From Callorhinchus milii (taxonomy: Eukaryota): 64,000 bases of DNA. Below are positions 2,362 through 39,458 of the stretch, piece after piece. Each line of letters starts with the position of its first letter. Position 1 is the first letter of the stretch. The stretch is taken from assembly GCF_018977255.1 (NCBI RefSeq), contig NW_024704742.1, forward strand, positions 137,764,001-137,828,000, given 5' to 3'. The notes under the pieces are model-generated. The model was not told the DNA's origin. It was given only the letters and a program-made list of their open reading frames with translations, and made no database searches. The position numbers were made by a program, and so were the translations under genes.

Positions 2362-2746
2362 CAACAACCTGCAGCCGTGACATGTCCTGTGTCACCTGGT
2401 CCTGTTGGTACGTCTTCCTTTATAAACATGACGTGTACGTGACAGAAATACCGTCCGGTGTCGTTTAACTCCAGGCCCCTGATCTTCAGGGAAGCGTCTC
2501 CATCTCCCACATTCCTGACCAGCTTGTAGCGATTTCCTTCATTCACTGTCTCTGACTCCCCGGAGTTGGTGTGGGCGGTGAGGCCAAGAGTGTAATTAAA
2601 CACCAGCTGCCCATGTGGCCTCCCTCTCCTCCAAAGCACTGTGACTGTGGCACGATTCTGGTATGTGTTGGGGATGGTGAAGGAGCAGGGCAGTGTGGCA
2701 TCACCTCCCTTGGTACCAGTCACTGACCGGAGCTTCTCTTCATGAC
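2362..2746 (-). pseudogene. Siglec-15-like gene A, V-set domain 2 exon with +1 frameshift near its 3' end
   Basis: ctcAG acceptor and GTAAGA donor. ATLPCSF...LW...ASLKI..L...DTGRYFC motif. 385 nt versus 384 nt for the gene B paralogue; the extra base lies near 2409-2413. Confidence 0.8.
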
Positions 2747-3286
2747 CTGAGACAGGAACAGGATTGGAATAGTGCAGAGCAGTCAGTGTGACAGAGTACA
2801 TGTTACACACTGTGAAATCCTGGATATGTTACCTGCTCTTCATGGCACCATCTCCCTCAGGCCTGTGCTCCTCACTCACCCTGTGTGAGCCTATGGGCAG
2901 CACAATGTCTCACACACAAAACCTGGGATTTTTTTAGGACCAATAAAATAATTACTGGCAAGTGTAGTGACTGTTTTGCAGCGAGTTTACTCAGATGATG
3001 GACCCCCAATGGTCATGAAGACTCCAGGATTCTACCCTGCACCCTGAAAGTTAATGAAAAGCCAATTCAGATTGAGGATTGTTGGTGAAGACCGAAGGAG
3101 AAAACCCCTCCTCATGTGTTGGGGCAGCCGATTGCCTGATACATACAGAAATATGTCACCATTGTAAAGAGTATCTAAACCAGAGAGTGAGTACTACATA
3201 TATATCCACTCTGAGTATCTAATTCAGAGAGTATTATGCACATGTTGGCAAGTGCAAGGCTTGGGGACACCAGAGTATGTGTTTGG

Positions 3287-3400
3287 GATTCAACCAACGA
3301 AAACAGCATAATATTAATAATAATAACAATTTGGAATTCAACCAACGAAAACAGCATAATATTAATAATAATAACAATAATAATAATAATAACAATAATA
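3287..3400. repeat. About 48-bp tandem duplication followed by (AAT/AAC)n
   Basis: attcaaccaacgaaaacagcataatattaataataataacaat occurs twice. Confidence 0.9.
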
Positions 3401-3469
3401 CCTACATTTGGAGTAATGTTGTTGAGATGTCTCAAAGTACTTCACAGAATATACAGTATTGCCATTAAT

Positions 3470-3795
3470 AAAAATAATAATAATAATTATTATTGATACA
3501 GCGCTTTTCATGTCTTTAGATGTCTCTGTTCCCTGTGATGGACGGTGTGCAGCAGAATATGCTGTAAAGTGAATTGACTGTATATTTGTGGGTGAAATGC
3601 AGCAGCCAAGTGCGCACAGCAGTGTCCCACAAACAGTCGTGGATTGATAATGACCAATTTCTTTTTCTCTTGAGGCATTATTATCAGGCGTGTGGCGTCA
3701 GGAAACTTGCCCAAGGTTTGACACTGCTGGGAATCGAACTCAGGCCTTCTCGCTTGTGAGGCGAGTGCTCTAACCACTACACTACAGGACTCCAC
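3470..3795 (-). mobile_element. Older SINE copy; related copies at about 5280-5640, 9220-9830, 18165-18530, 27190-27390, 51780-52110 and 52725-52980 (all minus)
   Basis: Shared gagtgctctaaccactgagctacaggactc head and gcagccaattgcgcacagc body. Confidence 0.8.
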
Positions 3796-4431
3796 AGCAC
3801 AGTTGGCCATTGACGGCACTGTGTGGCAAGCTTCCTGCTGCTTGTGTAGATCTGTGGTGTTATTGAGCTGAGTGGGAATGGTCGCGCCCAGTGACTGGTC
3901 TGCCAATGAGGCTGATGCCAAATCAGCAGTGCCCTGGAGTACTGCGACCGCCTGGCTCAGGAACCAGACTAGAGACCCCCACAGAGGGTTGACTCCTGCC
4001 CGACGTCCTGTGGCCTGGTATGTCACTGTGGAGCCAGTCCCTGCTTTACACCGGCTTTGTGGTGGGAGAACCTTACAGGGCAGTTTGTGACCTGCCAGCC
4101 ACCTTGATGTTCTCGAGATCCATTGCCACGTCCCAGGCTTACTGATCACCAGCTGCTGAATCCAGGTCCTCATGTGAGGGGCCTCGGCAAATAGACAACC
4201 CCACAGTGAGGCCGCCTCAGCCTCCAGGTGCTCAGTGACAGGTCAGTGTACAGCACAGCCCTCCCTCCCTGCAGCCGCTCACTCACTGTCACCTGTCAGC
4301 TCCCTGCTACACACCGTCCATCACAGGGAACACTGGCTCTCTATTGCCCGTCCTGGGACGGGACACTTCCCACTGACTCCGGCCCCAGTGAGGAACGTCA
4401 CGTCTCATTCCCACTTCCCATCGTTCCTCAC

Positions 4432-4821
4432 CTGTAACAATCAGACGTGCTCCGGGGTCAGTTTCAAACTTTCCGTCCCCACCCTGGAGCTCCACACGAC
4501 AGGACCACAGCGTATTATTATCCTCTCCCCTCAGTTGGTTTATCTTTATTGTAGCGTCGTTCCTCCTCGGGTTCCCAATCACTCGATATCGCTCTCCCTC
4601 GTTTACATCAATGACATTTTGATACTTTCCCTGTGAATCCGGCCTATAATTTGTATATTTAATATACACAGGACCAGTCCTTCCTGCCTTCCACATGATG
4701 GTGATGTTCCCTGTGTATCTGGGGTGAGGGGGAGTGAACTTGCAGTACACAGTGACCGGTGACCCTAACCTGCCGGTCACTGTATCGGGGGTCTCCATCG
4801 TCCAGCCATTCTCACTGAGCC
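4432..4821 (-). CDS. Siglec-15-like gene A, V-set domain 1 (intact, essential Arg in CRVE)
   Basis: cacAG acceptor and GTGAG donor, 390 nt, phase 1-1. WTMETP...VYCKF...W...YRVIGNPRRND...SCRVEL...RLIVT matches human Siglec-15 as I recall it (WSMQVP...LPCTF...FRLLGNPRRND...FCRVEF...RLHVT). Confidence 0.9.
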
Positions 4822-6047
4822 CTGTGAGGACACACATGGTGTAATGTGAACCAGAACACAACATAAAAGCAAACAGGTAACACTGAGCTTGTACAAGAGC
4901 TTGGTTAGGTCACAGCGGGGAGTAATGTGGATAGTATTGGGATCCCCACTGTAAGAAGGATAAAAAAGTGATGGAAAAGTTGCAGCTTAGATTCACTGCG
5001 ATGTCCCCAGGGTTTAGCGGTTTAAGTTTGTAAAGGAGATTTGAAAGGTTGGGGCTTTTTTAGCAAACTGAGAAGGTTAGGGGTGACCTGATAGCGGTCG
5101 CTAAACCTCAAAGAGTCACAAAAGATTTTCCTCTCATCAGCCAGTCAGTCACAAGAGGAATAAATCTAAAACAATCACAAAAAATTAACTAAGAGAGGGT
5201 TAGAAACCTTCACTTTACACAGAGAGGATGGGATTGTGGAATCCTCTGCCACAGACGGAGTTGAGGCAAAGTCCGTCAATAATAATAATGAGTCTTGCAT
5301 TTCATACAGGTTTGATCACATCTTCGAGATGTCTCAAAGTGCATCATAGAATACACTGTAAAGTGAATTGACAGTATATATTGTGGGCGAAACGCAGCAG
5401 CCAATTGCGCAGCTGTGTCTCACAAACAGTCGTGGATTGAACAACATATTTATAATTTTTTTTGAAGGAATTATTCCCCACGAAAATGTGAACCACCAAT
5501 CAACTAACAACCAGGTTCCTACTTACTGCTAAGTAAACAGAAGCGTGTGGTGAGAGGAAAATTGCCCAACTTATGCTAATTGAACCCAAGTCTCTTGCCT
5601 GCGAGGCGAGTGCTCTAACCACTGAGCTACAGGAATCCACAGTCAAGTCAATAAAAGGGAATTGATGTTCGAAGAGGAGGAAATTAAATGGTGTTGGGGG
5701 GAGGGAGAGTGAGCGAGACACAGGGTGGGACTCAGCGTCATGTGAACAAAATAAAACTTGTCAAAATGGAATGAACGGGCGGAGGGGCTGTTTTCATGCT
5801 ATAAAAATACCATCATACCTTTCATGTCGGGAGGACATCAAGAGAGGGGTGAGGGGAAGGGACTGTGGGATGGAGTTCCAAAGGGTGAGGCAAACACTTA
5901 CACTGTGGGGCTCAGTGAGTAACACAGTTCTGTTCAGTTTAGAGACGGGAATCTTATTTGCAGGAGATATCACATGACTGTAATTATTCCAGTAAAAGGT
6001 AAAGCAGTAATTAAAGCCAGTCAGGTTTCTGATTGGAAAGTACGTAC

Positions 6048-6099
6048 GGGAGGCAGAGGCTGACAGGACCAGGGTACAGAGCACAGCTCCCAGCATCAT
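6048..6099 (-). CDS. Siglec-15-like gene A, exon 1 (signal peptide MMLGAVLCTLVLSASAS, ends phase 1)
   Basis: ATG at 6099, 17 mostly hydrophobic codons plus 1 nt, then donor GTACGT. Same 52-nt size as the signal exons of genes B and C. Confidence 0.85.
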
Positions 6100-6230
6100 C
6101 GTCCCTCACTCAGGACACACTCCTTCCCCGCGCACGTCTGCCTCGCACTGGCACAGCTGGTCACCCTTCTCTTTCCTTCCTCCTCTAGTTCTGTGGTCAC
6201 CACCAGAGCTCCACCCCACACATCCGCTTT
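6100..6230 (-). promoter_or_regulatory. Candidate proximal promoter/5' UTR of gene A (RUNX TGTGGT, E-box CAGCTG, Ets-like GAGGAA)
   Basis: Motifs at 6192-6197 and 6154-6159. The block is retained at 17818-17940 upstream of gene B, and A/B homology ends shortly beyond it. Confidence 0.35.
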
Positions 6231-6639
6231 GTTCTGATGCTCCGTCATGTTTCTCCCCAACACTAACCCGCCCTCACCCCCTGTCACAGTAACTGGGTGA
6301 CTTTTAATGCTCTATTACATTTCACACCCTTTTTATATTCGCAGCGTTTACATGGGAACACAAGAATTTGCTGATGAAGACAAAGGTCCATCTTGTTTGC
6401 CTTCCACCATCCTGGTAGTCGCTTGACGTGTCATGTCCCAGTGTATCCCAAGATATTATTTTTCTAGCAGAACTCTAATTTGTTCTTGAAACAGACAACT
6501 CTCTTTGCTTCCACCATCTTCCTCAGGAACCTTCCATAAGTTTCCTACTCTCTCACTGAAATACCGATCAAATGTTTTAATAACCTTTCCATTTCTGTAT
6601 TTGATGCAGAATTTGTAATGTTAGAAAGTCTTGAAGGTT

Positions 6640-6990
6640 TTCAACAGATCGTGACTGTGTTCATGGACAAACACAGCAGCGAGTTTGCACACAGCGATAT
6701 CACAAAAACAGTTAACTATGTTTTTGTGAACCATTAATCTGGTTGATCGTCGCGCAGGAAGCCGGGAGGAACTCGCTTCTCTTTTCCATCAGTGTCGAAG
6801 GATCTTTAATGTCAGTTAAACAGGTTCTTGGTTTAACGTCTCGTCTGAAGGACGGCAACTCTGAGGATGTACAGCTCCCCCTGGGCTGGAGCATCAGCCT
6901 GGACTCTGAGCACAATCCCGACATGGGCACGAACCCAGGCTTTAGACCCAGAGGTGAGAGTGTGACTGACTGAGCCAAACTGACTTCCTG
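6640..6990 (-). mobile_element. Older DeuSINE-like element (SacSINE1/AmnSINE-type); similar at about 29480-29650, 39030-39380, 39700-39970, 52110-52400 and 59630-60900
   Basis: tRNA-like head plus tgccgtccttc.gatgagacgttaaacc and Deu-domain-like segments. The family name comes from recalled similarity, not a search. Confidence 0.6.
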
Positions 6991-7119
6991 CGTTATGTTA
7001 AGGTCAGAGAAGTGGAGCCGCTGTCCATGTGATTTGTTGGTTTACAGCACAGAAGCCTTCCCCCCCTCTGCTGTCTGTGCTGGTGATCGCTCTTTACTGG
7101 GGCTCTATACGGCAGCTCT

Positions 7120-7360
7120 CTGTGTGTCTATGATTGTGTCTCTGTGTGTGTGAATGAATGTGTTCATCTTTCTCTATGTGTCTGTGTGTGTGTCTCTCTC
7201 TGTGTCTGTGTTTGCGTCACTCTCTGTGTGAGTGACTGTGTGTGTCTTTCGCTCTCTTTGTGTCTGTGAGTGAATATGTCTCTCGCTATGACGTGAGTGT
7301 ATGTTAGTCTCTCTCTGTGTTGGTCTCTCACTGTGTGTGTGTGAGTGTCTCTCTGTATGT
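7120..7360. repeat. Degenerate (TG)n/(TC)n microsatellite
   Basis: Direct inspection. Confidence 0.9.
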
Positions 7361-7769
7361 CTGTACATGGTGGAGGCCTTGAGAGCTCTGCAGCTCATGT
7401 CCTCTCCTGCACCTGGCGCTGTGACCCTGTCACCCCCACCCTCGCCCGGCGTCACTGGCTCCACTTCCCGCAGAGGATAGAGTTCAAAATCCTCATCTTT
7501 GCCTTCAGGGCCCCCACGGCCTCGCTCTTTCCTACCTCTGTGACCTGCTAACCCCATATCAATTTGCGCACTCCCTCCACACAGCAGGCTTCGGCCCACA
7601 CCAGGTCTGCCCTCCTGCCCACCATCAGGAGTGGGCATTCAGCCTCTCCGTCCCCACCCTTTGGAACTCTACCCAACAGTCCCTCCACTGCGCTCCCACC
7701 CTCGCCTCTTTCCAGGTACGTCTCAAGATCCGCTGCTTCGACATTGCCTTCGGGAACTCTCCTACAGCA

Positions 7770-9110
7770 ACAGCACAACAACAAAATTACATTTGTAAGC
7801 ACCTTTCACGTCGTGAGGACGTCCCAAATTGCTGGACAGACAGAGTTACGGACCCGAACTGGGGGTTGGGGTCGGGGAGTGTGGAGGGCAGTGGGGGAAG
7901 CAGGGAGATCAAAAGAAATGTCGAAGGGGAGGGTCTTGAGTTGGGTCTTGAAGTTGGCAAGGGAGGGGGCGATGCGGAGGGACTGCGGGATGGAGTTCCA
8001 GTGGATGGGGTCAGAGTGGAAGATGTCCCGCCTGCCAATAGTAGCGCAAGTGAGGCGGGGAACATGATGCAGGGCAGAGCCCACTGAACAGAGGGAGTGA
8101 GCAGGATGGTAGGTGGTTAGAAAGTCACAGAGGTGGGGGGGAGCAAGACCATGGAGGGTTTTAAATGTGAGGACCGGGGTCTTGAACTGTATCCTCTGGG
8201 TGATGGGAAGCCAGTGGTGTTAGGCGAGGATAAGATCATGGAGATTAGTGCGGGAGAGGATACAGGCTGCAGAGTTCTGGATGATCTGCGGCTTATGGAG
8301 GGAGGAGTTGGGGAGGCCGAGAAGCAATGGGTTTGCAAAGCCAAGCCACGATGTAATGAAAGCGGCCTGCGGGGTGAGACAGTGGCGGAGCCGGGCGATG
8401 TTGCAGAGGTGGGAAGCCAGAGCGGGTCGTGATGCATATGTGGGGTAGAAAGGAAAGTTTGGCTCAAACAAGACCCCGAGGTTCCGTGCTGCTCAGTGAG
8501 GTGGAGTGTGCAACCATGGATGGTGGTGCTGTCAGCGCCTGAGGTGAGGAGGTGCTGACGGGAGCCAATCGGGAGAGCCTCGGTCTTGTTGACGTTCAAC
8601 TGAAGGAAGTTCGCTCTCATCCAGGACTTGATGTCTGACAGACATTCTGTCAGGACAGCAGTGGTCCTGGAGTTCAGGGTGGAGGCAGAGAGGTTCAGTT
8701 GGGTGTCATCTGCATACGTGTGGAAGTTGACCCCATGTCTGCGGATGATGTCACCGAGAGGGGGCATATAGATATTGAAGAGGAGGGAAACAAGGACAGA
8801 GCCCTGAGAAACACTGCACGAGACGGTGGGGATCCCAGAGGAGAAGCCGTTTGTGGAGATGAAGTGGAGGCGGTGTGAGAGGTACGATCTGAACCAGTCA
8901 AGGACAGAGCCATGAACGTTGAGGTGAGAGGAGAGGCAGTGGATGAGGATAGAATGGTCGACGGTGTCGAAGGCAGCAGAGAGGTCAAGGAGGACGAGTA
9001 GACAGAGGGAGCCCTGGTCCCAGATAGACAGAGCGTCATTTGTCAGTTTGTCACTCCGACCCTCCTTGCCCTCCGCCATCCCTGATCCCAACAACTCTCC
9101 TGCACGGATC
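7770..9110 (-). mobile_element. L2 LINE fragment (tail-to-tail with a plus-strand L2 piece at about 7360-7730)
   Basis: ORF 8117-9094 with [18 protein letters not shown] and YADDTQL. Confidence 0.92.
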
Positions 9111-9901
9111 TAAATGCCTGACTGTCCAACCTCTTGGGATATCCTCCCAATGTGAACGGCGCTATACAAATCTAAAGTTGTATTGTCATTTTCTTTGTAA
9201 TAAATCTTGCAATTGATACAATGCGTTGTCACATCTTTGAGACGTCTCATAGAGCTTCACAGAGTATACTGTAAAATGCATTGACTGGGTATTTTTAAGG
9301 AGAAATGCAGCTGCTAATTGCATACAGCAGTGTCCCACAAACAAAGTGACCAAATTACTTTAAAAACAATTTTTTTGAAGGGAGTATTACACTAAAAGCG
9401 ATCGACTGACCTGTTTAGTTCCCACTGTCTGATAGGTAAACAAAGGCACGTGGAGGAAACGTACAGCGCTATACAATCTAATGTTGTATTGTCATTTTGT
9501 ATTGTAATAATCCTTCCCTGGATATAGCGCATTATCACGTCTTTGAGACGTCTGAAATCGCTTCACAGAATATACTGTCAGGTGCATTGCCTCTATATGT
9601 TGTCGGCAAAATGCGGCAGCGAATTAAACACATCAGTGCCAGTCGTGGATTGAGTGAACAACTTTTTTTTAAGGGATTATTACCTTCCGGAAAAGCGATC
9701 GACTTAAACAGAGGTGTGTGAAGTAAGGAAACTTACCGATCTTTTCACCCTGTCCGGGAATTGAACCCAGATCCTCTCACTTGCGAGGCCAGAGCTCAAA
9801 GCTACAGGACCACTAAGCTACAGGACTCGATTATTGTCTCACAGATTCACCCGCCTGCAGACACACTAACCCACACGACTGAGTGATACCTTCACAAGTA
9901 T

Positions 9902-9907
9902 TTTATT
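9902..9907 (-). other. Probable polyadenylation signal (AATAAA) of gene B
   Basis: TTTATT on the plus strand inside a block (about 9890-9950) homologous to 20995-21060 downstream of gene C. Confidence 0.5.
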
Positions 9908-10579: not shown

Positions 10580-10629
10580 CTATACAGAGCTCCTTCTTTT
10601 CTTGGCCTCAGGATGGAGACGCCTTGAAT
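10580..10629 (-). CDS. Siglec-15-like gene B, terminal coding exon (tail DSRRLHPEAKKRRSSV*)
   Basis: Polypyrimidine tract plus catAG acceptor; homologous to 22260-22410 of gene C. The phase-1 reading follows the TM exon. Confidence 0.6.
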
Positions 10630-10962
10630 CTATGAGTGAAGAAAAAGAATGAGATCATGTTTCAGCCAAACAAACACTGTTATTGGGAGTCACGGGTTCC
10701 CATGTTCTCAAAGGCTCAACAGAATCGCAAAATTACACCTCGTCTCAGCCCTTGAGATGTTTTGCCCATAAACCCAGGGTGGTACAGAAATGGGGTAAAT
10801 CCAACAACAACTTGAGAGGAACAAACAGGGACTGAGGCAGGGAGTTCCAGAGATTAGGGTCATAGTGACAGGAAGCGCAGCCACTGATGCTGGTGTTGAG
10901 GGGTCAGGGGACGTGCAGCAGGCCTGTGCAAAGAGGGTGGGCAGAGCAGTGGGGTACAAGGT

Positions 10963-11291
10963 GTGGAGTCCTGTGGCTCAGTGGTTAGAGCACTCGCTTT
11001 GCAAGTGAGAGACCTGAGTTCAATTCCAGGCAGAGGGCGAAACCTTGGGCAAGTTTCCTTACTCCACACAGAGCCTAATAATAATCCCTCCAAAAACCAA
11101 AAAACAATAATAAATTGGTCATTTTCAATCTACGACTGTTTGTGGGACATTGCTGTGCGCAATTGGCTGCCGCGTTCGCCCACATATATGCAGTCAATTC
11201 ACTTTACAGTGTATTCTGTGAAGCGCTTTGGGACGTCCTCCCGACGTGAAAAGCGCTATATCAAATGCAAGGATTATTATTATTATTATTA
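10963..11291 (+). mobile_element. Young full-length tRNA-derived SINE (Deu-domain-like body, L2-type tail, (ATT)n)
   Basis: A box TGGCTCAGTGG, B box GTTCAATTCC, TTTGCAA loop (Ala-TGC-like). Flanked by an apparent AAGGTG target-site duplication. Confidence 0.9.
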
Positions 11292-11393
11292 TAAGGTGAT
11301 GGAGAGTAACTGGGAACTTTTTAAGACTTGTGAAAAAGTTAAAGACTGAACGGTCTGACCGTCTGGAATTGTGTTTTACAGACAAGAACAAAC

Positions 11394-11768
11394 CTTGTGT
11401 TTTACAGAGGAGAACGATCCCGATCACCAACAGAAAGAGACATTTAGCTGCTGGCATCAGCCACAGCATCGCAGTGATGAAGCTGCCATCACTCTGTGGT
11501 CCAGGTGCGAGGATGTCTCGGGCGTCTCTGCCCTGTGTGTTCTCAGCTACACAGCGGTAAGTTCCCCTCAGCCTCGGGCCCCGGATCTCCCCCACGGTTA
11601 GATGCTTGTCCGGTACATGTGTGACTGGCGTGTGGCTGGTGTTAATGGGCAGCGTGTTATTATCAGGGTCAATCCATGTGATGTTAGCCAGTGGTTCCCC
11701 CTCAGCCGAGCACACAATGTCACCTCCGGCCACGAGGGACAGACTCAGGATGACGGCCGGAGCTTCAG
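11394..11768 (-). CDS. Siglec-15-like gene B, C2-set domain plus transmembrane helix with Lys
   Basis: VCSAEGEP.A.ITW...GTYRCVAEN..G resembles the Siglec-15 C2 domain (LCTAEGEPP...YTCTAANSLG). TM is FITAMLWLMPAAKCLFLLVIGIVLL. Donor GTTTGT is conserved with gene C. The acceptor is at 11768 or 6 nt downstream (both in frame). Confidence 0.88.
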
Positions 11769-11809
11769 CTATAAAGAAACACAGAGTTATTCTAACCAAA
11801 CAACTGTCC

Positions 11810-12495
11810 CTATGGTGTCTGTGCTGGTGCTCACTCCCCCACTGGAGCTCTCTACTCTAACCCCATTCCCTGCTCTCTCTCCCCATGGTGTCTGTGCTGG
11901 TGCTCTCTCCCCCACTGGAGCTCTCTACTCTAACCCCATTCCCTGCTCTCTCTCCCCATGGTGTCTGTGCTGGTGCTCACTCCCCCACTGGAGCTCTCTA
12001 CTCTAATCCCATTCCCTGCTCTTTCTCCCCATGGTGTCTGTGCTGGTGCTCTCTCCCCCACTGGAGTTCTCTACTCTAACCCCATTCCCTGCTCTCTCTC
12101 CCCATCGTGTCTGTGCTGGTGCTCTCTCCCCCACTGGAGCTCTCTACTCTAACCCCATTCCCTGCTCTCTCTCCCCATCGTGTCTGTGCTGGTGCTCTCT
12201 CCCCCACTGGAGCTCTCTTCTCTAACCCCATTCCCTGCTCTCTCTCCTCATCGTGTCTGTGCTGGTGCTCGCTCCCCACTGGAGCTCTCTACTCTAACCC
12301 CATTCCCTGCTCTCTCCCCATCGTGTCTGTGCTGGCGCTCGCTCCCCACTGGAGCTCTCTACTCTAACCCCATTCCCTGCTCTCTCTCCTCATCGTGTCT
12401 GTGCTGGTGCTCGCTCCCCCACTGGAGCTCTCTACTCTAACCCCATTCCCTGCTCTCTCTCCCCATCGTGTCTGTGCTGGGGCTCACTCCCCCAC
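11810..12495. repeat. About 73-bp minisatellite, about 9.5 copies, in the gene B V2-C2 intron
   Basis: Unit atggtgtctgtgctggtgctcactcccccactggagctctctactctaaccccattccctgctctctctcccc, starting at 11812, 11885, 11958, 12031 and so on. Confidence 0.95.
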
Positions 12496-12839
12496 TGGTG
12501 CTCTCCAGTTCCACTCCAAACACGTTTCACAATTCGTTTTTAATATTTGGGTCTATTCGGGACCCAGCGCTTTGCGACGTCCTCCTGATGTGAAAGACGC
12601 TCTATAAATGTACTTTGTTGTTGTATTTTCTGGAGTTTCTGTAGATATTTGTTAATAAGAAGTATTTCATTTCAAATGTGTAAAACATCAGTGTTGAATG
12701 TATTTGATAATCACAAGGTCACGAGAGGTTTGTGTGAAGAAAGTGCTTCAGCCCATTTGATCTCAATCTTCCCGTCCCCCCCAACCCACTGTCGATGTTA
12801 CAGCATCAAGCTCTTTCTGTTATGAGCTCCAGTATCATA

Positions 12840-13944: not shown

Positions 13945-14328
13945 CAAACACCTGCAGCCGTGACATGTCCTGTGTCACCTGGTCCAGTTGGAATTCTTTC
14001 TTCATAAACATGACGTGTACGTAACAGAAATACCGTCCGGTGTCGTTTAACTCCAGGCCCCTGATCTTCAGGGAAGCGTCTCCATCTCCCACATTCCTGA
14101 CCAGCTTGTAGCGATTTCCTTCATTCACTGTCTCTGACTCCCTGGAGTTGGTGTGGGCGGTGAGGCCAAGAGTGTAATTAAACACCAGCTGCCCATGTGG
14201 ACTCCCTCTCCTCCAAAGCACTGTGGCTGTGGCACGATTCTGGTATGTGTTGGGGATGGTGAAGGAGCAGGGCAGTGTGGCATCACCTCCCTTGGTACCA
14301 GTCACTGACCGGAGCTTCTCTTCATGAC
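13945..14328 (-). CDS. Siglec-15-like gene B, V-set domain 2 (intact, no essential Arg)
   Basis: 384 nt, phase 1-1, AG acceptor and GTAAGA donor; LPCSF...W...DTGRYFCYV...RLQV. Confidence 0.88.
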
Positions 14329-16500: not shown

Positions 16501-16525
16501 ATTCCCACTTCACATCGTTCCTCAC

Positions 16526-16914
16526 CTGTAACATACAGACGTGTTGCACAACTGGTTTGAAACTTTCCGTCCTCACCCTGGAGCTCCACACGACAGAAAA
16601 ACAGTTTATAATCGTCCTCTCCCCTCAGTTGGTTTATCGCTATTGTAGCGTCGTTCCTCCTCGGATCCCAATCACTCGGTGTCGCTCTCCCTCGTTTACA
16701 TCAATGACATTTTGATACTTTCCCTTTGAATCCGACCCATAATTTGTATATTCAATATACACAGGAGCAGTCCAGCCTCCCAGCCACCTGATGGTGATGT
16801 TAAATGTGTATCTGGGGTCAGGTGGAGTGAACTTGCAGTACACGGTGACCGGTGACCCTAACCTGCCGGTCACTGTATCGGGGGTCTCCATCGTCCAGCC
16901 ATTCTTACTGAGCC
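16526..16914 (-). pseudogene. Siglec-15-like gene B, V-set domain 1 exon with -1 frameshift (or a sequencing error)
   Basis: 389 nt versus 390 nt in gene A. One base is missing at about 16663-16669 (GGATCCC), giving a TAG at 16640-16642. Restoring the base gives ...IG(D)PRRNDATIAINQLRGEDDYKLFFCRVELQGEDGKFQTSCATRLYVT with normal splice sites. Confidence 0.8.
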
Positions 16915-17765: not shown

Positions 17766-17817
17766 GGAAGGCCGAGGCTGACAGGACCAGGGTACAGAGC
17801 ACAGCTCCCAGCATCAT
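17766..17817 (-). CDS. Siglec-15-like gene B, exon 1 (signal peptide MMLGAVLCTLVLSASAF)
   Basis: Near-identical to gene A exon 1; donor GTACGT. Confidence 0.85.
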
Positions 17818-22391: not shown

Positions 22392-22396
22392 TCAAT
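22392..22396 (-). CDS. Siglec-15-like gene C, terminal exon start (G+AT = Asp, then TGA); the remainder is 3' UTR to about 20990
   Basis: tttcccacAG acceptor homologous to gene B 10629. AATAAA signals at 21005-21010 and 21012-21017 on the minus strand. Confidence 0.5.
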
Positions 22397-22499
22397 CTGT
22401 GGGAAAAGTAAAAGCATTTACTGTCCTTGTTTCAATGAGAATGGGATCACTTTTCAGCCAATCAATCGCCATTTTGAGTGCTGCTTAAGCAATTGCCAT

Positions 22500-24107: not shown

Positions 24108-24488
24108 CTCCCATTTTACAAACGAGAATGATCCCCGTGACCAACATAGTGAGAAATTTAACTAAGGGTATCAAACACAGTATCGCGATGATGAAACTGC
24201 CATCTCTCTGTGGGGCAGCGACGAGGATGTCTCTGGTGTCCCTGCCCTGTGTGTTCTCAGCTACACAGCGGTAAGTTCCCCTCAGCCTCGGGCCCCGGAT
24301 CTCCCCCACGGTTTGATACTTGTCCGGTACGTGTGTGACTGGCGTGTGGCTGGTGTTAATGGGCAACGTGTTATTCTCAGGGTCGATCCATGTGATGTTG
24401 GCTGGTGGTTCCCCCTCAGCCGTGCACACAATCCCACTTCCGGCTCCATCACCGGCCACGAGGGACAGACTCAGGATGACGGCCGGAG
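24108..24488 (-). CDS. Siglec-15-like gene C, C2-set domain plus transmembrane helix with Lys
   Basis: IVCTAEGEPPANITW...GTYRCVAEN; TM is FIIAILCLIPLVKFLTMLVTGIILV; donor GTTTGT; 381 nt, phase 1-1. Confidence 0.85.
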
Positions 24489-26607: not shown

Positions 26608-27024
26608 CGACGACCCGCAGCCACATCTGATTCTGCGTCACATGTTCCTGTGTAGTGTGTCCATGAGACACATGTCCCTGCGTCGTGTGTTCCTGCGTCG
26701 TGTATTCCTGCAGTGTGAACGTGACGTGTACGTGACAGAAATACCGGCCGGTGTCATTTAACTCCAGGCCCCTGATCCTCAGGGAAGTATCTCCATCTCC
26801 CACATTCCCGACCACCTTGTAGCGATTTCCTTCATTCGCTGTCTCTGACTCCCCGGGGTTGGTGTGTGAGGCGAGGCCAAGCGTGTCATTAATAAACGGC
26901 CGGCTTTGTGGATTCCCTCGCCTCCAAATGACATAGATATTACTTGGGTGAATGCCTGGCATGGTGAAGGAGCATGGCAGTGTGGCATCACCTCCTTTGG
27001 TACCAGTCACTGATAGGAGTTTTC
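26608..27024 (-). CDS. Siglec-15-like gene C, V-set domain 2 with repeat-expanded F-G region
   Basis: Paralogous to the V2 exons of A and B; donor GTAAGT. The ancestral acceptor is deleted; the in-frame gaAG at 27026-27025 is inferred as the acceptor (417 nt). Confidence 0.8.
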
Positions 27025-27434: not shown

Positions 27435-27839
27435 CCATCACCAGGAGAGTAGTTTCAGTCGAGCTCACGAGCACCTCAGATCCGTTGCCAGTGAGTGCCA
27501 CCCAGCACTGGTACCTGTGCTGACTGTCAGGCAGAGTGAGCTTCTCCACCGCCAGTGAGGCGTTCATCTCCCTCGGGTTCCCCGCCAGCCAGTACCGCCT
27601 GCCCGCGTTCCGATGGATCAAGTTCTCAGATGTATTGGACGGAGCATTGAGTGGGAGGTAGTTTGTGCAGTTGAACACTACAGCTCTGCTGCTTTTTCTC
27701 TTTGTTGTCCATACGACTGAGATGTTGCCTTTATACCCGGGGTCGGGGAGTGAGAAGCTGCAAAGCAGAATGACAGAGTCCCCTTCCCAGCCAGTCACCA
27801 TTTCAGGGGCTTCCATCACCCAGCCGTCATCAACGGCAT
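27435..27839 (-). CDS. Siglec-15-like gene C, V-set domain 1 (intact; Trp at the essential-Arg position)
   Basis: gcAG acceptor and GTGAGT donor, 405 nt, phase 1-1; WVMEAPE...LLCSF...VVW...FNC...YWLAGNPRE.NASL...YQCWV. Confidence 0.88.
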
Positions 27840-30489
27840 CTGCCAGCAAACAATAGGGCACAGAGGGCGAACAGGACACGCAATCAATTAAATCAATATC
27901 ATAAGAATAGGAGTAGGTCATTCAGCCTCTCGAGCCTGTTCCGCCATTCCATTAGATCACCACTGATCTGTAACCCCAACTACAATTAACCGCCCTTGAT
28001 ACACTGATCTACGTCCCCCACCTCGCCCACCCCAACATTGGCGGGCGGGCCTTCAGCCACTCTGACCCCACCCTCTGGAACTCCATCCCGCAGTCCCTCT
28101 GCCTCACCCCCATCTCAAGACCCTCCTCTTCGTCCATGCTTTTGATCTCCCTGCTTCCCCCCCTTGCCCTCCACCCTCCCTGATCCCGACCCTCAGCTGA
28201 CTGCCCAGTGCCCTGGGATGTCCTCCCAACATGAAAGGTACTATACAAATGTAATTTTGTTGTTATTGTTGCTGACCTAAACATTTACCAGCTCAGTCTT
28301 GAAAATTTCAATGGATCCAGCATCCACAGCCTTTTGAGGAACAGAGTTCCAGATTTCCACTCCCCTTTGCATGAAAAAGTGTTTCTTGATTTCACTCCTA
28401 AATGGCCGAGCTCTAATTTTAATATGGTGCATCCCTTTTTCTGGAGAGGAAAGTTTCTCTGTAGCTACCCTATCAAATCCCTTTATTAATAATGATAATC
28501 CCTTCAAAACCAAAAACAATAATAAATTGGTCATTTTCAATCTACGACTGTTTGTGGGACATTGCTGTGCGCAATTGGCTGCCGCGTTCGCCCACAAATA
28601 TACAGTCAATTCACTTTACAGTGTGTTCTGTGAAGCGCTTTGGGACGTCCTCCCGACGTGAAAAGCGCTATATCAAATGCAAGGATTATTATTATTATTA
28701 ATTAGATCCTCAATCTTCTAAACTCAAGTAAATACTGACCAAGTATTCTCTTGAGTTTAGACCCTCTTGGGAGAGAGTAGAGTGCTCATTCCATTCCAGA
28801 TAAACAGAAATTTCATAGTACAGTATTGTAGAATCCTCGGTAGTTTGGTTTGTGGACTCTTAAGCACGGTGATAGATTTCCTCTTGTATCAACACCCGGC
28901 TGACCACAGACAAAGTGTCTGCGCTCTTACTGGAACCCTCGATTCTAATCTAGTTTCTAACGTTAAAATGATGCTAATTTTAGAGCACATGAGCTACCAG
29001 AACAAAGGCGCAGTTAAAGAGTTTCTCGTCTTATTGAATCCCTTTATCATTTTAAAAACAAACCTCGATTAGATTAACTCTCAACCTTCCAAACACAAGG
29101 GAATACAAGCCAAGTTTATGCAACGTCTCTCCATAATTTAACCCTTTAAGCCCTGGTATCATTCTGGTGAATCTGCGCTGCACCCCCTCGAGAGCCAATA
29201 TATCCTTCCTAAGGTGCGGTGCCCAAAACTGAACACAGTCTCCAGATGGGGTCTGAACAAGGCTCTGTAAAACTGTCAATCAATCAATCTCTTTCACTCC
29301 ACATAACATGCCTCACAGTGAACCACACGACAGGTGCAGGTGCCAAAGGTTCAGGTTTAGCTCAATTTTGATAATCCTTCCATTTTGATACAGTGCCCAT
29401 AACATCAAATTTAGTGACTGTGTATTTATATTCAAAGGCATCAGGCATTTTGCTCACAGCAATGTTCCGTAGACAGCCATGACATGAATGGCCAATTATT
29501 CTGGTGGGATTATTGGTCAGGACACTGGGAATATCTTCACAGCGCAGCCCTAACACTGCGCTGAGATTCAGCTTGGACCGTGAGCTCAAAGTCCTCGATC
29601 TGGGCCAAGAAGCAACAAGCTTCTGACCCAGAGTTAAGAGACAGGCTGTCATTTGAGTGTCGTTTGAATGTCAGCGTGGACGTTTGAAGCTCAAAAATCT
29701 ATTGGCTTCAGTTCAATTTTTCATGTTGTCATTGGGTCCTGTTCCAAGTGACTCCCTTTCAATTAAATATCAAACCCATATTATCTTTTACATTGGCATT
29801 CCAAATGAAGTCGTATAATTCTGCTTAACCCTTTATCCCTTCATATCATTTCGCCCACAAAATAGTCAATTCAATTCACTTTACAGTATATTCTGTGAAG
29901 CGCTTTGAGATGGCTAGAAGACATGATAAGGCGCTACATCAAATGCAAGGATTGTTATTATTATTATCTCCTGAGATTGTGGCCTTGTCAAACAGCACTT
30001 AATATTGGGATAAGGATCACTACTCTGAGGGGGATGGTTGGCCATGACACTGGGAGAAACTCCCTTCTCTTTTCTTGTCATGTAATTGCTAACATCCACC
30101 CAAATAAATAGACTGGACCTTGGGTTAGCATTCCATCTACTGAATAATGCATTTCTGCATATTTCTGTACTGGAGTATCAGCCTAGACTGTGAGTTCAAC
30201 GTTCCTGAGACTTGAACCCAGGGCCTTCCACTGTCTGACCCGCACGAAAACCCATCACTGATTAAGCGTTTTTAAACAGTGAGACTTCCATATACGTATG
30301 TCACGTATACATGGGATATTCCTTGTGTCTGGAATGGAATGCGCACTCTCTCCCTGGAGGGAGGCATCCTGCTTACCTAATTCCAGATAGTATTAGGCAC
30401 AGGTTGGTGAGAGCCGAGGCTTGGGGACTCCGGAGTGTGCGTTGGGATAACTGCTGGAATCAAATCATCTAAAATCATCATGGTCTTGG

Positions 30490-33425: not shown

Positions 33426-34781
33426 TAAAAATGCATAGCTTGCCATTATATCACTGTCTGGCAAGCTTTCCTGCTGTTTGTCCAGTTAGGACCACCCTAC
33501 TCATTAGGACTTTGGCTGTGCCCAGTGACTGATCTCCCCTTCTAGTTCCTGCCGATGAGCCAGGCTGGTTGTGTTGCCATCGGAAGTGCCCTGGGATGCT
33601 GCACACCTGCCTGACTAAGGAACCGGACTGGAGACCGTCACAGTGGATTGTTTGATTCCGACAGTCCGTTGCCAAGCATAGAAACAGGAGTAGGCCATTC
33701 AGCCCCTCGAGCCATTCTATAAGATCAAGGCTGATCTGTAACTCGAGTCCAATTACCCACCTTTGCCCTAAATCCTTTAATACCCTGACCTAACAAATAA
33801 CTATCCACTTCAGTCTCGAAGATGTGTGTGGATCCAGCATGCACAGGCTTTTGGGGGAGAGTTCCAGATTTTCACTAGCCTTTGGGTGAAAAACTGCCTC
33901 CTGATTTCTCTACTAAATGGCCAGTTCTAATTTTAAGATTATGCCCCCTTGTTCTGGATTCGCCCACCAGAAGAAATAGTTTATAATAATAATAATAATA
34001 ATAATAATAATCCTTGCATTTGATATAGCGCTTTTCACGTCAGGAGGACGTCCCAAAGCGCTTCACAGAACACACTGTAAAGTGAATTGACTGTATATTT
34101 GTGGGCGAACGCGGCAGCCAATTGCGCACAGCAATGTCCCACAAACAGTCGTAGATTGAAAATGACCAATTTAATTATTGTTTTTGGTTTTGGAGGGATT
34201 ATTATTATGTGCAGCTATTCTATCAAATCCCTTTATTATTTTAAAAATCTCAATCAGATCACCTTCTAAACTCAAGGGAACAGAGACCAATTTTATGCCA
34301 CCTGTCCTTATAATATAACCCTTTTAGCATGTCACCTTAGAGCCAGTTTATCTCCTTGGAGCCAAGTCTGCTACAATGAGTTTGCCGATCTCTGTCAAGG
34401 TTGCGTGTGGGTTAACGTGTACTTTCCCAAGGTTGGGGCTGAGAGAAACAATCAGGCTTTCTTTGCTCCTTTACAGTGCCCTCAAATGGTAGCGTGTGGA
34501 AGTGCTAGGGTGTTCGAGGATGCCCTCCACATTAAGCACTCCTTGCCTGGATCGCACAGGAAGGGCCACGTGTGCCGGGTACCGGAGAGTGACCAGCGCC
34601 AACCAAGAGGTTGTGCAATCCTGTAGCTTATTGGTTAGAGTGCTCGCCTCGAAAGTGAGAGGACCCAGGTATTATTCCCGGGCAAAACCTTTGCAAGTTT
34701 CCTTACTCCACACTCCTGTTTACCGAGCAGTAAGTAGGAACCCAATTGTCAATTGTTGAATCACTTTAAGGGGATAAAGCG

Positions 34782-35112
34782 GTGGAGTCCTGTAGCTCAG
34801 TGGTTAGAGCACTCGCTTTGCAAGTGAGAGACCTGAGTTCAATTCCAGGCAGAGGGCGAAACCTCGGGCAAGTTTCCTTACTCCACACAGAGCCTAATAA
34901 TAATCCCTCCAAAAAACCCAAAACAATAATTAAATTGGTCATTTTCAATCTACGACTGTTTGTGGGACATTGCTGTGTGCAATTGGCTGCCGCATTCGCC
35001 CACAAATATACAGTCAATTCACTTTACAGTATATTCTGTGAAGCGCTTTGGGACGTCCTCCTGACGTGAAAAGCGCCATATCAAATGCAAGGATTATTAT
35101 TATTATTATTAT
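34782..35112 (+). mobile_element. Young full-length SINE, same family
   Basis: Near-identical to 10963-11291. Confidence 0.9.
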
Positions 35113-35281
35113 TATAATAATCCCTCCAAAGATAAATAAAATAATAATTTGGTCACTCAATCCACAACCTTTTATGAGACACTGCTGTGCGCAATTGGCT
35201 GCTGTTTCACCTACAAAATATAGTCATCTCAATGATGGGATATGGCTCTATATCGAATTGCAGGATTATTATTATTATTAT

Positions 35282-38200
35282 CCCTCACCTCCCTCCAGCA
35301 AACCCACCCACAGTTCCCTCCAAAATGTTTGTTTGCTCTCAAACAAAGCCCTCACCATCCACGACCTCATCCTGGATGAGCACCTCAACATTCTTGGGCT
35401 CACCAAAACCTGGCTCTCCCCGAATAACCCCATCCCCCTAGTTGAAGCCTCCCCCCTCAGGCTACTCTTTCTACCCCTCCCCCCCACGTCCAAACCAACA
35501 TGGTGGCGAATTGGCCCTCATCTCCAAAGCCTCCCTTGGTCTCACCCGCTACTCCTCTGGCTGCTTCCCCTCCTTTGAGCACTTCATCCTCTTCCAACCC
35601 TCTCTCCCACTGAATATTCTCCTGGTCTACCACCCCCCACTAAGCCCCCCCTGGCTCCTTCCACACACACATCTCTACTCTCCTCTCTTCCCTGTCTCTC
35701 TGCTCCGAATGCCTGCTCATAATGGGCGATTTCAACCTCCACCTAAACTCCCCTTGCACCACTTCTTCTGACTTCACTGCCCTCCTCTCCTCCCTAACCC
35801 TCACCCTTCATTTACATTCACCGACCCACAATCGCATCATCACCCACGGCCTTGACACTTCCTACCTGAGTATAGTGGACACGGCCATCTCGGACCACTT
35901 CCTCATCTTCTTCTCCTCTCACATCACTCTCTCCTCCACGAAGCCAAGCCCTCAACCATTCTTTACCGCCCATGGAAAAGGCTACCCACTGAGACCCTCA
36001 CAAAGGCCTTCACATCCTCAAATATCCTATCCCTCTGGCCTTCCACCTGCGGAGATCCTGAAGCAGCCAACCAGCCGCTCCATGATCACTTCTCCTCCAC
36101 CTTCAACTCTCTCATCCCCCTGAAATCCAGGACCATTTCCAAACCCACCCGATCCCCCTGGTATAACAACCATCTCCGCCACCAAAAATCCCAAACCCGG
36201 CTGCTCGAGCGCAGATGGTGGAAAACTGGCCTGACAGTTCACTGCAAACTGTGGCTCGAGCATCTCCACAGCTACCGCCGTTCTTTGACACGCGCAAAAA
36301 CGGCCTTCTACTCCAACATCATCTTGGAGGCTAAACACAACCCTAAAATCCTTTTTTTCACCACCCACTACCTCCTCCGTGCCCCCCTCAGGCCTCCTCA
36401 ATCTTCACATCCAATGCCAAGTGCGAGGAGGTCATGGACTTCTTTTCATCCAAAATACACAACATCCGCCAGGCAGCCTCATCCTCCTGCTTCTTGTCAC
36501 CCACCACCAACCCTCTCCGTCCCCTTCACCCTCCCCATCATCAGCTCCTACCACCACCCCCATTTCTTCCTCCCCATCGCTCCTTCCTCACTCTCACCCA
36601 CCATCACCTAATGAAACCCACCACCTGCTGCCTCGACCCCCTTCCCACCAATTTGCTGGTCACCCAGCTCCCCTCCTCTGCTCACTACTGACTGATGTCA
36701 TCAACCAGTCCCTCTCCTCTGGATCAGTCCCTGCCTCCCTCAAAACTGCTGTCATCACCCCCATCCTCAAAAAACCTTCCCTAAATCCCTCAAACACCAG
36801 CCACTACCACTCTATTTCAAACCTGCCCTTCCTCGCAAAAGTCCTAGGACACATTGTTGTAAATCAACTCCGCGCACACCTCTCCTCCCACTCTCTCTTC
36901 AAACCCCTCCAGTCCAGATTCCATCCTGTCCACAGTACAGAGACTGCGCTTGTAAAGTCTCAAACGACATCCTCTCTATCTGTGACCAGGGCTCTCTCTC
37001 TGCCTCCTTGTCCTCCTGGACCTCTCTGCCACCTTTGACACAGTCGATCACGTCATCCTCCTCCACCGCCTTTTCTCCGTCATCCATCTCAGTGGGACCG
37101 CACTCGCCTGGTTCGAATCCTACCTCACAAACCACCAGCAGTACATTTGCACAAACAGCTTCTCCTCCCACTCTCACCAGGTTACCTGTGGGGTACCCCA
37201 AGGATCCATCCTTGGCCCCCTCCTCTTTCTGATCTATATGCCCCTCTTGGAGATGTCATCCACGGCCCTGGGATCTATTACTGTGAAGCGCTGTGAGATG
37301 CTGTCTGGCGTGGAGGGCGCTATATAAATCCAAGTTGTTGTTGTTGTCCAAAGAATGGCAGCATTGTTTGTCCTTCTATTCCAAGGTAATCTTGGAGGGC
37401 AAGGACAACCTCAGGCTTCTCTTCTCCACTGCCAACCAGCTATGCTGTCCACCCTCTCATGCCTGGCCCATCCTCTCCTCCAACTCCTGAATTTCCTTGA
37501 GACCCAACTTGAAGGGATATGTTCAGGCCCCTCCGACTTCCCAATCGCCACTCGCTTCCCATCTCCCCCTCACACTTCGGCCCCTATCCATCCCTCCCTC
37601 CACACCTTCAAACTTGTCTCCCCCTCCTCTCTGACCACCACCTTAACCTGCATGAAGCCCACCACCTGCTCCCTCAACATCCCCACCCCTCTACTTACTT
37701 CCCAGCTCCACCTCCTCGACCCTTTACTCTCAGACCTTGTCAACCTCTCCCTGTCAACTGGCACCGATCCCACAACATGGAAACAGCCTTGGTCAAGGTG
37801 ACAAATGACATTCTGTCCATCTGTAACCAGGGCTCCATGTCTCCTCGTCCTCCTCCACCTCTCTGCTGCCTTCAAAACTGTGGACAACTCTATCCTCCTC
37901 TACTGCTCTCCTCTCACCTTATCCTTCAAGGTTTTGTCCTTGAATAGTTCAGATCATATCTCTCACACCAGCTCCATTTTGTCTCCACAAATGGCTTCTT
38001 CTCTAGTCCCCGCACCATCTCGTCTGGTATTCCTCAGGGTTCTGCCTCGGTCCTTTCCTCTTCAATCTGTACATGCTCCCTCTTGGTGACATCACCTGCA
38101 GACATGGGGTCAACTTCCACATGTACGCAGATGACACCCAACTCTTTCTCTCTGTCTCCATCCTCGACCCCAGAACCACTGATGTCCTGCCTGTCTGACA

Positions 38201-38830
38201 TCAAGTCTTGGATGAGAGCTAACTTTTTACAGTTGAACGTCAGCAAGATTGAGGCTCTTCTGATTGGCTCGCACCGTCACCTCCAAATCTCAGACACTGG
38301 CAGCATGAACATCCATGGATGCACATTCCACCTCACCAGGAACCTTGGTGTCTTGTCCTTTCTCCCCCACATCCGGACCATGACCGCTCTGCCTTCCCCC
38401 ACCTTCATGACATTTCCCAACTCCATCACTGCCTCACCCCTCAGGCCCCAAAACTCTCATACATAACTTCATTACAACCAGGTTGACTATTGCCAACTTC
38501 CTGCTTGTCGGCCTTCCCAACTCTTCCCTCACAAGCTGCAGATCATCCAGAACGCTGCAGCTTGTGTTCTCTCCCGCAACAGGTTCCGTGACCTCTTCAC
38601 ACCCACCCTCGCCCAGCTCTACTGGATACCCATCCCTCGCTGCCTCCCTTGTCTCTTTCAAGGCATGCCTCAAGACCCTCCGGCTACCCTCCTAGCTCCA
38701 CCCCTTGCCCTCCACCCTCCCTGATCCCACTCACCCCCACCCCTGGCTTGGGTCCTAATCCCTGACTGCTCAGCACTTTGGAATGTCCTCCCGAAGTTTT
38801 GCAAACAAAGCTTTACAAATTCAATTTTGT
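35282..38830 (+). mobile_element. Two consecutive decayed L2 elements; the first retains an endonuclease region
   Basis: NVCLLSNK...DLIL...LGLTKTWL (APE-like endonuclease) followed by RT motifs; the second copy starts at about 37350. Confidence 0.88.
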
Positions 38831-39406
38831 ATTGTACTGTTGTATTGCACAAATACATAGTCACTACACATAACAGCAATTACTGTGAATTACTGTAGTT
38901 CCTGTAATTACTGTGAGTGTAATAAATGTGAAGCAGTTTGAGAGATAGGGCAGAGTAAAGTGCAAGTCCTTTATTTTCCAATAAGACAATAGGTCTTTAT
39001 ACTCAAGTAAACCTCAAATAACTTTCTTGGCAATGAGTCAGAAAGTTGTGAGTTCAAGCCCCATGTCAGGACTAGGCTGACTGACACTCGAGTGCAGCGC
39101 TGCATTGTCAGAAGTGCTGTCCTTCGAATGAGACATCAAACCAATGTCCCATCTGCCTGTTCAGGTGGGCGATAAAGATCCCAAACCCAGAAGGGAGTTT
39201 CTCTTGGCCAACAATCCCCCAGAAATAAATCATTCACTTCAGGGTTATTTGTGAGACATTGCTGTGTGCAAAAAGGTTGCTGCATTCCTCTAAAAATATA
39301 CAGTCACTACACTTTACAGTAAAATCCTGGGAAATGTTTTGATATCTCGACAACAAGATAAGGTATTATGTCAAATGCAAGGAAAATTACATAGTAAGGT
39401 ACTTAC

Positions 39407-39458
39407 ATGCGACTTGGGCGGTCGCTAAGAATGCAGACAGCGCAATCCACAGTATCAT
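39407..39458 (-). CDS. Siglec-15-like gene C, exon 1 (signal peptide MILWIALSAFLATAQVA, ends phase 1)
   Basis: ATG at 39458, 17 hydrophobic codons plus 1 nt, perfect GTAAGT donor, same 52-nt length as A and B. Joins in frame to the 27839 exon. Assignment to gene C across an 11.5-kb intron is inferred. Confidence 0.7.

Follow-up and report, generated by a model that had tools for sequence, protein, structure and literature searches.

The question raised by this locus is whether the Siglec-15-like receptor genes of a cartilaginous fish fit the accepted picture of one conserved gene. The window analyzed here (the whole 64-kb stretch of DNA, from the chimaera Callorhinchus milii, the elephant shark) carries a tandem cluster of immunoglobulin (Ig) receptor genes, in which a preliminary description had noted an extra variable (V) domain. 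Siglec-15 has been portrayed as a conserved single-copy activating lectin with one V and one C2 domain 'from fish to mammals', and its hallmarks are R143, which serves sialic-acid binding, and a transmembrane (TM) lysine, which serves DAP10/DAP12 (PMC7226832). Our reading, held with a probability of about 0.7, is that the window covers part of the C. milii Siglec-15-family tandem cluster with an ancient second V domain and one intact copy, and with a mechanism that is proposed by analogy.

Gene models were rebuilt from the DNA after six-frame reading. The window has eukaryotic composition and dense interspersed repeats, and Ig-domain open frames were seen at three places on the minus strand. 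These were assembled into genes A, B, and C (Table 1), which share one plan: a signal-peptide exon, two V exons, an exon for C2 and the TM segment with its lysine, and a tiny last exon. GT-AG was found at every rebuilt junction of the three genes. The layout in the preliminary description (signal peptide, V, V, C2, and TM with lysine) was recovered, as Pfam returned V-set twice followed by Ig_3/I-set, and the lysine lies mid-TM in genes B and C, as had been claimed. The same description had three minus-strand genes whose phase-1 exons assemble in frame; the exons are real, all are on the minus strand, and gene C is in frame, but genes A and B are frameshifted. These three genes form the right-hand portion of a Siglec-15-family tandem array, and no further family exons or tails with inhibitory motifs of the immunoreceptor tyrosine-based type (ITIMs) were found between 28 and 64 kb of the window.

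The coding sequence of gene C has five exons and 1260 nt, equal to 419 aa and a stop, so that the earlier estimate of about 419 aa was matched exactly by the five GT-AG exons. The first four exons all end in phase 1. Of the signal-peptide candidates in 27.8-46 kb, only the exon starting at 39458 is strong, and at 52 nt it is as long as the first exons of genes A and B; the single other candidate was rejected, as it sits within a copy of a short interspersed nuclear element (SINE). Pfam placed V-set, V-set, and Ig_3/I-set in this order on the protein, and its tail is one residue (C-terminus ...VCKMGD, compared with ...KIKD in shark orthologues). The sequence predicts a product of type I membrane topology, whose ectodomain has two V domains of the Siglec-15 type and a C2 domain and whose TM segment has a central lysine. 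The second V domain (V2) of gene C also carries about 16 extra Thr/Gln/His-rich residues (26640-26720, EYTTQEHTTQGHVSHGHTTQEH), which are seen neither in genes A and B nor in the shark orthologues.

Both V domains of gene C point to Siglec-15. The best PDB match of the membrane-distal domain (V1) was human Siglec-15 (7zoz) with an E value of 1.8e-10, the next match being at 1.8e-3, and the best match of V2 was the same structure (E 3.2e-10), followed by CD276 at 5e-8. As V2 also matches Siglec-15 best, the extra domain is a second Siglec-15-type V domain and not a borrowed one. When profiles were searched exhaustively, the short proteins outside chondrichthyans that came closest were those annotated as SIGLEC15 in lungfish, coelacanth, frog, birds, one mammal, sturgeon, bowfin, and gar. 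Membership in the Siglec-15 family, as claimed earlier, was therefore upheld both by the two V domains (E ~1e-10) and by the annotation of the nearest non-shark proteins. The window genes share the TM lysine motif ...IK(V/F/L)LLLL... with SIGLEC15 of birds, lungfish, and coelacanth, and C2 and TM are encoded on a single exon in sharks as well as in bird SIGLEC15 (bird residues 146-266, TM Lys included).

The motifs GNPRRND, CRVE, and CTAEGEPP had also been said to match Siglec-15. All three are present and align to human Siglec-15: GNPRRND and CRVE in V1 of gene A, CRVE in V1 of gene B, and CTAEGEPP in the C2 domain of gene C. However, when the gene C C2 domain alone was compared with PDB, Ig domains of receptor tyrosine phosphatases (RPTP) and contactin outscored Siglec-15, and CTAEGEPP was therefore discarded as a Siglec-15 signature and regarded as a generic C2/I-set motif. 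The AlphaFold model of a C. milii paralogue, P0003, shows, besides three beta domains, a helix at residues 368-402 that is centered on K382 (mean predicted local distance difference test score, pLDDT, 81.6). A Foldseek search with this model returned generic three-Ig proteins only.

The receptor family with this V-V-C2 architecture had been put forward as possibly undescribed. This did not hold, since RefSeq/Ensembl models of it already exist in C. milii and in more than 10 sharks and rays; with such orthologues in automated annotation, the reservation made in the preliminary description itself applies at that level. No paper describing a V-V-C2 family was found in the literature searched. In C. 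milii, model P0001 (XP_007907096.1, SIGLEC15 isoform X1) shares 99% identity with gene C across 96% of the query. Its 5' end is dubious, with first exons at 43105-43203 and ~44 kb that provide no signal peptide, and at the 3' end the model continues past the last donor; these first exons are placed just beside a GC-rich island (Table 1).

The full-length proteins of sharks and rays (V-V-C2-TM with Lys, ~400 aa) cover 88-100% of gene C and their alignment with one another runs from the signal peptide through both V domains and C2 to the TM segment. Among the genera are Cetorhinus, Chiloscyllium, Heterodontus, Mustelus, Rhincodon, Pristis, Hypanus, and Mobula, and the names given to the models are SIGLEC15 (many), SIGLEC12, CXADR-like, CD276-like, and uncharacterized. 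The TM segment is almost invariant in shark and ray proteins, LCLIPL(I/V)KFLLLLITGIIL, and the protein stops one or two residues later. The five-exon layout was identical in three shark loci. Gene C is the chimaera counterpart of this V-V-C2-TM(Lys) gene, which sharks and rays have conserved. Accordingly, the lineage-specific expansion with an extra V domain that had been proposed is only partly borne out: C. milii has several copies and the two V domains are real, but the extra V is ancient and chondrichthyan-wide.

A second chondrichthyan family, with two V domains and a TM segment but no C2 domain (V-V-TM; P0048, P0074, P0109, P0125, P0126, P0163), was seen outside the window. Its genes lie on the same chromosome records as V-V-C2 genes, ITIM tails are present in most members and a TM Lys in one, and all are 'uncharacterized' in RefSeq.

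The age of the second V domain was assessed with a V-domain tree that had lamprey proteins as its only outgroup. The Siglec-15-type V domains of jawed vertebrates formed one clade against lamprey (support 100/99), within which five lineages made up a polytomy: bony-vertebrate SIGLEC15 (87/87), the chondrichthyan V-C2 gene (100/100), V1 from V-V-C2 genes (92/79), the first domain of the V-V-TM family (100/99), and V2 of the V-V-C2 genes together with domain 2 of the V-V-TM family (98/95). From the last of these clades it follows that the V-V arrangement predates both the split between V-V-C2 and V-V-TM genes and that between chimaeras and elasmobranchs. In lungfish, gar, Metynnis (a characin), and axolotl, the V domain closest to either one of the pair is the other of the same species, and independent duplications are therefore concluded for these four. 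In the C2 tree, the chondrichthyan V-V-C2 and V-C2 genes grouped together as sister to sarcopterygian/tetrapod SIGLEC15 (84/75), with ray-finned fish outside. On the simplest reading of the sequences, the V-V-C2 and V-C2 genes of chondrichthyans would be co-orthologous to SIGLEC15 through a tandem duplication in the chondrichthyan stem. The lamprey proteins P0080 and P0132, which served as the outgroup, have three or four tandem Siglec-15-like V domains, some with arginine in Y-Y-C-R; they are unnamed or 'uncharacterized', and the name 'junctional adhesion molecule-like' has been given to a Petromyzon protein in the P0080 cluster.

The two hallmarks of Siglec-15 are distributed unevenly in this family. 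At the equivalent of human R143 (F strand, C-R-V-E), V1 has Trp in gene C and Arg in genes A and B and in P0003, and V2 has His in genes A and C, Tyr in gene B, and His in nearly all relatives. In V1 of other proteins the position is occupied by Leu in most shark and ray Lys-type proteins and by Cys in P0004, an ITIM-tailed C. milii protein, and Arg is kept in Heptranchias, Mustelus, and Narcine. Elasmobranchs also have V-C2 genes named 'SIGLEC15' (Carcharodon P0057, Cetorhinus P0203, Amblyraja P0077). These are members of the family as well and share a chromosome with the V-V-C2 genes; in Cetorhinus (basking shark), the V-C2 and V-V-C2-K genes are ~31 kb apart on one chromosome. The V-C2 genes differ in having a single V domain with FCRVE (Arg kept), an uncharged TM, and a longer tail. 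As V-C2 keeps the Arg without the Lys and V-V-C2 keeps the Lys, the hallmarks of Siglec-15 are split between neighboring paralogues.

In contrast to gene C, genes A and B are interrupted as assembled. The V1 exon of gene B (389 nt) has one base fewer than that of gene A, and its frame stops after ~107 aa; the V2 exon of gene A has one base more than those of genes B and C, because of which it meets the donor out of phase. Both indels are outside homopolymer runs, and nearby substitutions accompany each. No C2/TM exon of gene A was found in the window, and the rest of this gene lies beyond the left window edge. Genes A and B are 91-94% identical over aligned blocks around the exons. Their divergence is 2.6-7.5% in noncoding exon flanks, 2.9% in the V2 exon, and 11.3% in the V1 exon (4432-4821 vs 16526-16914), the last being four times the 2.6% of the intron immediately upstream. 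Identity of gene C to genes A and B is 33-37% in V1, 66% in V2, and ~85-89% in C2. By these values, genes A and B are recent duplicates, and gene C is older than the pair. Whether V1 of gene C represents an older lineage than V1 of genes A and B was addressed by the approximately unbiased (AU) test; this idea was not retained, as monophyly of the C. milii V1 domains was not rejected (p = 0.26).

Since V1 is the domain least conserved between paralogues, the distal V1 is the variable part of the receptor. Its variability fits a ligand-binding role, but also gene conversion or relaxed constraint. Synonymous and non-synonymous sites of the V1 exons of genes A and B have diverged equally (ratio of non-synonymous to synonymous substitution rates, dN/dS, ~1), and positive selection on V1 was not adopted as the explanation, as patchy gene conversion or relaxed constraint explains the divergence between A and B equally well. 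The excess divergence of this exon could have come from patchy gene conversion from another paralogue or from past diversifying selection.

The frameshifts could be assembly or consensus errors, or null alleles of the sequenced individual, with all three genes being functional. Two annotated models suggest that an intact allele or near-copy of gene A exists: P0053 consists of the gene A V1 exon with intron read-through and only two residue changes, and P0003 is an intact 414-aa V-V-C2-K protein with the V1 of gene A. Genes A and B are otherwise open and their splice sites are intact. However, the indels are not in homopolymers and have substitutions close to each, a dN/dS of ~1 fits relaxed constraint, and P0003 is possibly a different paralogue and not an allele; no record of its genomic locus was found that would place it as an allele of gene A or a separate copy. 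We consider three functional genes rather unlikely. It is far less probable that the mature receptors are V-C2 as in mammalian Siglec-15, one V exon being skipped or alternative and the V-V-C2 form a prediction artefact. All internal exons are in phase 1, so either V exon can be skipped without loss of frame, and predicted isoforms of whale shark (P0022), Hemitrygon (P0021), and Scyliorhinus (P0018) are without most or all of V1; a search for transcript-sized contigs of a shark orthologue returned genomic records only. Yet in the chimaera as well as in sharks and rays, both V exons have stayed open and retain core motifs and conserved cysteines; each V forms its own conserved clade, which argues for selection on both. 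The full V-V-C2 model also recurs in more than 10 independently annotated genomes, plus two Chiloscyllium assemblies, and elasmobranchs already possess a separate, dedicated V-C2 gene.

The arginine data bear on a further alternative, in which the family is no longer one of lectins, its members being B7/NKp30-like protein-binding immunoreceptors descended from a Siglec-15 stem. It is consistent with the replacement of R143 by Trp (gene C V1), Leu (most shark and ray Lys-type proteins), Cys (P0004), and His (almost every V2), with CD276/B7-H3 and TIM proteins as the next-best solved relatives of V2, and with V1 being the most divergent domain between the paralogues. On the other hand, V1 retains the Arg in genes A and B and in the three elasmobranch genera named above, and other Siglecs are known to bind glycans in non-canonical ways; this alternative is possible, although we do not favor it. 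The reading of the window as part of a Siglec-15-family cluster with an ancient second V must itself be set against several points. In the assembly only one of the three genes is intact, and both the 11.6-kb first intron of gene C and the joining of V1, V2, and C2 in C. milii are predictions from gene models. The V tree is a five-way polytomy and does not single out an orthologue of SIGLEC15, and a further gene under the name SIGLEC15, of the V-C2 type, is present in elasmobranchs at ~31 kb from the V-V-C2 gene. The neighbor in the window is an SLC5A6-like gene and not EPG5, which adjoins SIGLEC15 in birds; bowfin SIGLEC15 has other neighbors, and the window shows the SLC5A6-like gene only, the 3' side of the cluster being outside it. 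A 'Siglec' function appears doubtful from the sequences, because gene C and most of the Lys-type orthologues of sharks and rays are without the essential Arg. With human TYROBP as the query, no DAP12/DAP10 of cartilaginous fish was among the best 120 matches listed, all of which were mammalian clusters, a list that has no bearing on sharks; the literature searched for DAP12 in sharks gave nothing useful. Finally, no ITIM exon was found in the window, and the ITIM genes are therefore placed elsewhere, probably further along the cluster.

Such ITIM-tailed forms exist in C. milii. P0004, with two ITIMs (VIYSEV, VIYAVV), is 88.7% identical to the Lys-type P0003 over 373 aa, and P0064, with two VIYSVV motifs, has almost the same ectodomain as P0003; both ITIM forms have an uncharged TM. 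Equivalent Lys/ITIM pairs were found in Heterodontus (P0009 vs P0023, 82%) and Heptranchias (77%), and ectodomain identity across the pairs is 77-89%. From these near-identical ectodomains, the family probably comprises paired activating and inhibitory receptors. Paired activating/inhibitory Ig receptors are represented by Siglec-5/14, KIR2DL/2DS, and LILR.

By analogy to Siglec-15, the following mechanism is proposed for gene C. Its product would be a type I membrane receptor with next to no cytoplasmic tail, and its mid-membrane Lys would pair with the aspartate of a DAP12/DAP10-like adaptor that bears an activation motif of the immunoreceptor tyrosine-based type (ITAM). DAP12 coupling of gene C and sialic-acid binding by the family are both inferred. 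Ligand is probably bound by the distal V1, which diverges fast; such binding would lead to ITAM signaling, making the protein an activating receptor on myeloid or natural killer (NK)-like cells, and the ITIM-tailed twins would oppose the Lys forms. As the Arg is replaced in V1 of gene C by Trp and in the V2 domains of the window by His or Tyr, the ligand may not be a canonically bound sialoglycan. More tentatively, the locus may belong to an ancient chondrichthyan paired activating/inhibitory system that arose from the Siglec-15 stem and gained its extra V early. The Lys arm would have lost the Arg, acquired a fast-changing distal V, and become a counter-receptor directed at non-sialoglycan ligands or pathogens, like the activating forms of Siglec-5/14 or KIR, and the V-C2 neighbor would keep the lectin role. 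We regard this history as conceivable and somewhat less probable than not.

The single-gene picture is thus replaced in cartilaginous fish by a gene cluster with an added V, split hallmarks, and ITIM twins. If expression and binding are confirmed, the cluster would offer an early instance, within the Siglec lineage, of how paired receptors evolve, and its natural Arg/Trp/Leu/His variants could be used for probing non-sialoglycan ligands of Siglec-15-type V domains. A consistent classification is of immediate practical value, because the sequences are already in RefSeq under inconsistent names.

Table 1. Exons of the three receptor genes and other features of the window.
Feature	Position	Strand	Remarks
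Gene C exon 1	39407..39458	-	Start codon and signal peptide MILWIALSAFLATAQVA; 52 nt; phase 1 end; GTAAGT donor
Gene C exon 2	27435..27839	-	Membrane-distal V-set (V1); YQCWVALTG, Trp at the Siglec-15 essential Arg
Gene C exon 3	26608..27024	-	Second V-set (V2); YFCHVHV, His at the Arg position; Thr/Gln/His-rich insert before G strand
Gene C exon 4	24108..24488	-	C2-type Ig and transmembrane helix; TM Lys codon 24157-24159
Gene C exon 5, coding part	22392..22396	-	Last codon (Asp) completed, then TGA directly
Gene B exon 1	17766..17817	-	Signal peptide, 52 nt
Gene B exon 2	16526..16914	-	V1, CRVE (Arg kept); 1-nt deletion near 16666, frameshift and early stop
Gene B exon 3	13945..14328	-	V2, 384 nt, open, in phase
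Gene B exon 4	11394..11762	-	C2 and TM; TM Lys codon 11443-11445
Gene B exon 5	10580..10629	-	Short tail DSRRLHPEAKKRRSSV and stop; 100% identical to tail of RefSeq LOC103174418 (P0003)
Gene A exon 1	6048..6099	-	Signal peptide, 52 nt
Gene A exon 2	4432..4821	-	V1, intact; GNPRRND and CRVE (Arg kept)
Gene A exon 3	2362..2746	-	V2, 385 nt, one extra base near 2412; out of phase at donor
SLC5A6/SMVT-like gene, first coding exon	55908..56384	+	Best PDB match SMVT, E 4e-48; Pfam SSF
Minisatellite	11807..12505		73-bp unit, 9.6 copies, 95% identity; gene B intron between V2 and C2/TM
LINE reverse-transcriptase open reading frame	8120..9109	-	Pfam RVT_1, E 4e-20
GC-rich island	44000..46000		63.7% GC; 54/65-bp tandem repeats at 45433-45691; long repeat-derived open reading frames

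Apart from the Ig genes, the SLC5A6-like gene (SMVT, sodium-dependent multivitamin transporter) was the one gene seen in the window, and it is transcribed away from the receptor cluster. Copies of a ~330-bp SINE were located at 10962-11291, 28489-28700, 33983-34207, 34782-35123, 43626-43946, and 48329-48655, with tRNA-like heads (tRNA-Ala by ARAGORN; Rfam tRNA). As these copies are mutually 94-98% identical, the family is suggested to be young and recently active; older SINE copies are found elsewhere in the window. The reverse-transcriptase frame of the long interspersed nuclear element (LINE) has many decayed relatives, and LINE-related pieces lie at 1-1500, 37769-38638, 46300-47440, and 49191-50103; one LINE insertion sits where the downstream intron of gene A continues. 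The Ensembl-type C. milii models P0084 and P0013 run into the minisatellite of gene B. The window holds a single N, at 52872.

Compared with known systems, the window genes resemble bony-vertebrate Siglec-15 (human 7zoz; bird, frog, coelacanth) in V sequence, in GNPRRND/FCRVE (genes A and B), in phase-1 exons, and in having a C2 domain that precedes a TM helix with Lys at its center. They differ from it in several respects: bony-vertebrate Siglec-15 has one V and a C2 domain, whereas genes B and C and all Lys-type orthologues are V-V-C2; its tail is longer and has an S/T-Y-E-N motif, whereas that of the window genes is 1-16 residues; it is single copy, whereas the window holds a tandem array; and its essential Arg is gone from gene C and from all V2 domains. 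They also resemble the V-V-C2-TM(Lys) genes of sharks and rays (Heterodontus P0009, Cetorhinus P0006, Pristis P0012), which have the same five exons and V domains in both clades, and with whose proteins gene C shares 43-45% identity across 94-97% of its length. C. milii departs from them in its extra copies (genes A and B, P0003), which have a diverged TM and a 16-residue tail, and at the V1 Arg position, which is mostly Leu in the shark and ray Lys-type proteins and Trp or Arg in C. milii. Lungfish SIGLEC15 isoform X2 (Protopterus XP_043934105.1, P0043) is V-V-C2-TM(Lys) like the window genes; however, the V-V forms of lungfish, gar, Metynnis, and axolotl come from recent duplications of their own, unlike the ancient chondrichthyan V2, and lungfish keeps the Arg in both V domains. 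Siglec-5/14, KIR2DL/2DS, and LILR resemble the family in having near-identical ectodomains on forms with either a charged TM and a short tail or an uncharged TM and ITIMs. They differ in V-domain lineage and in taxon.

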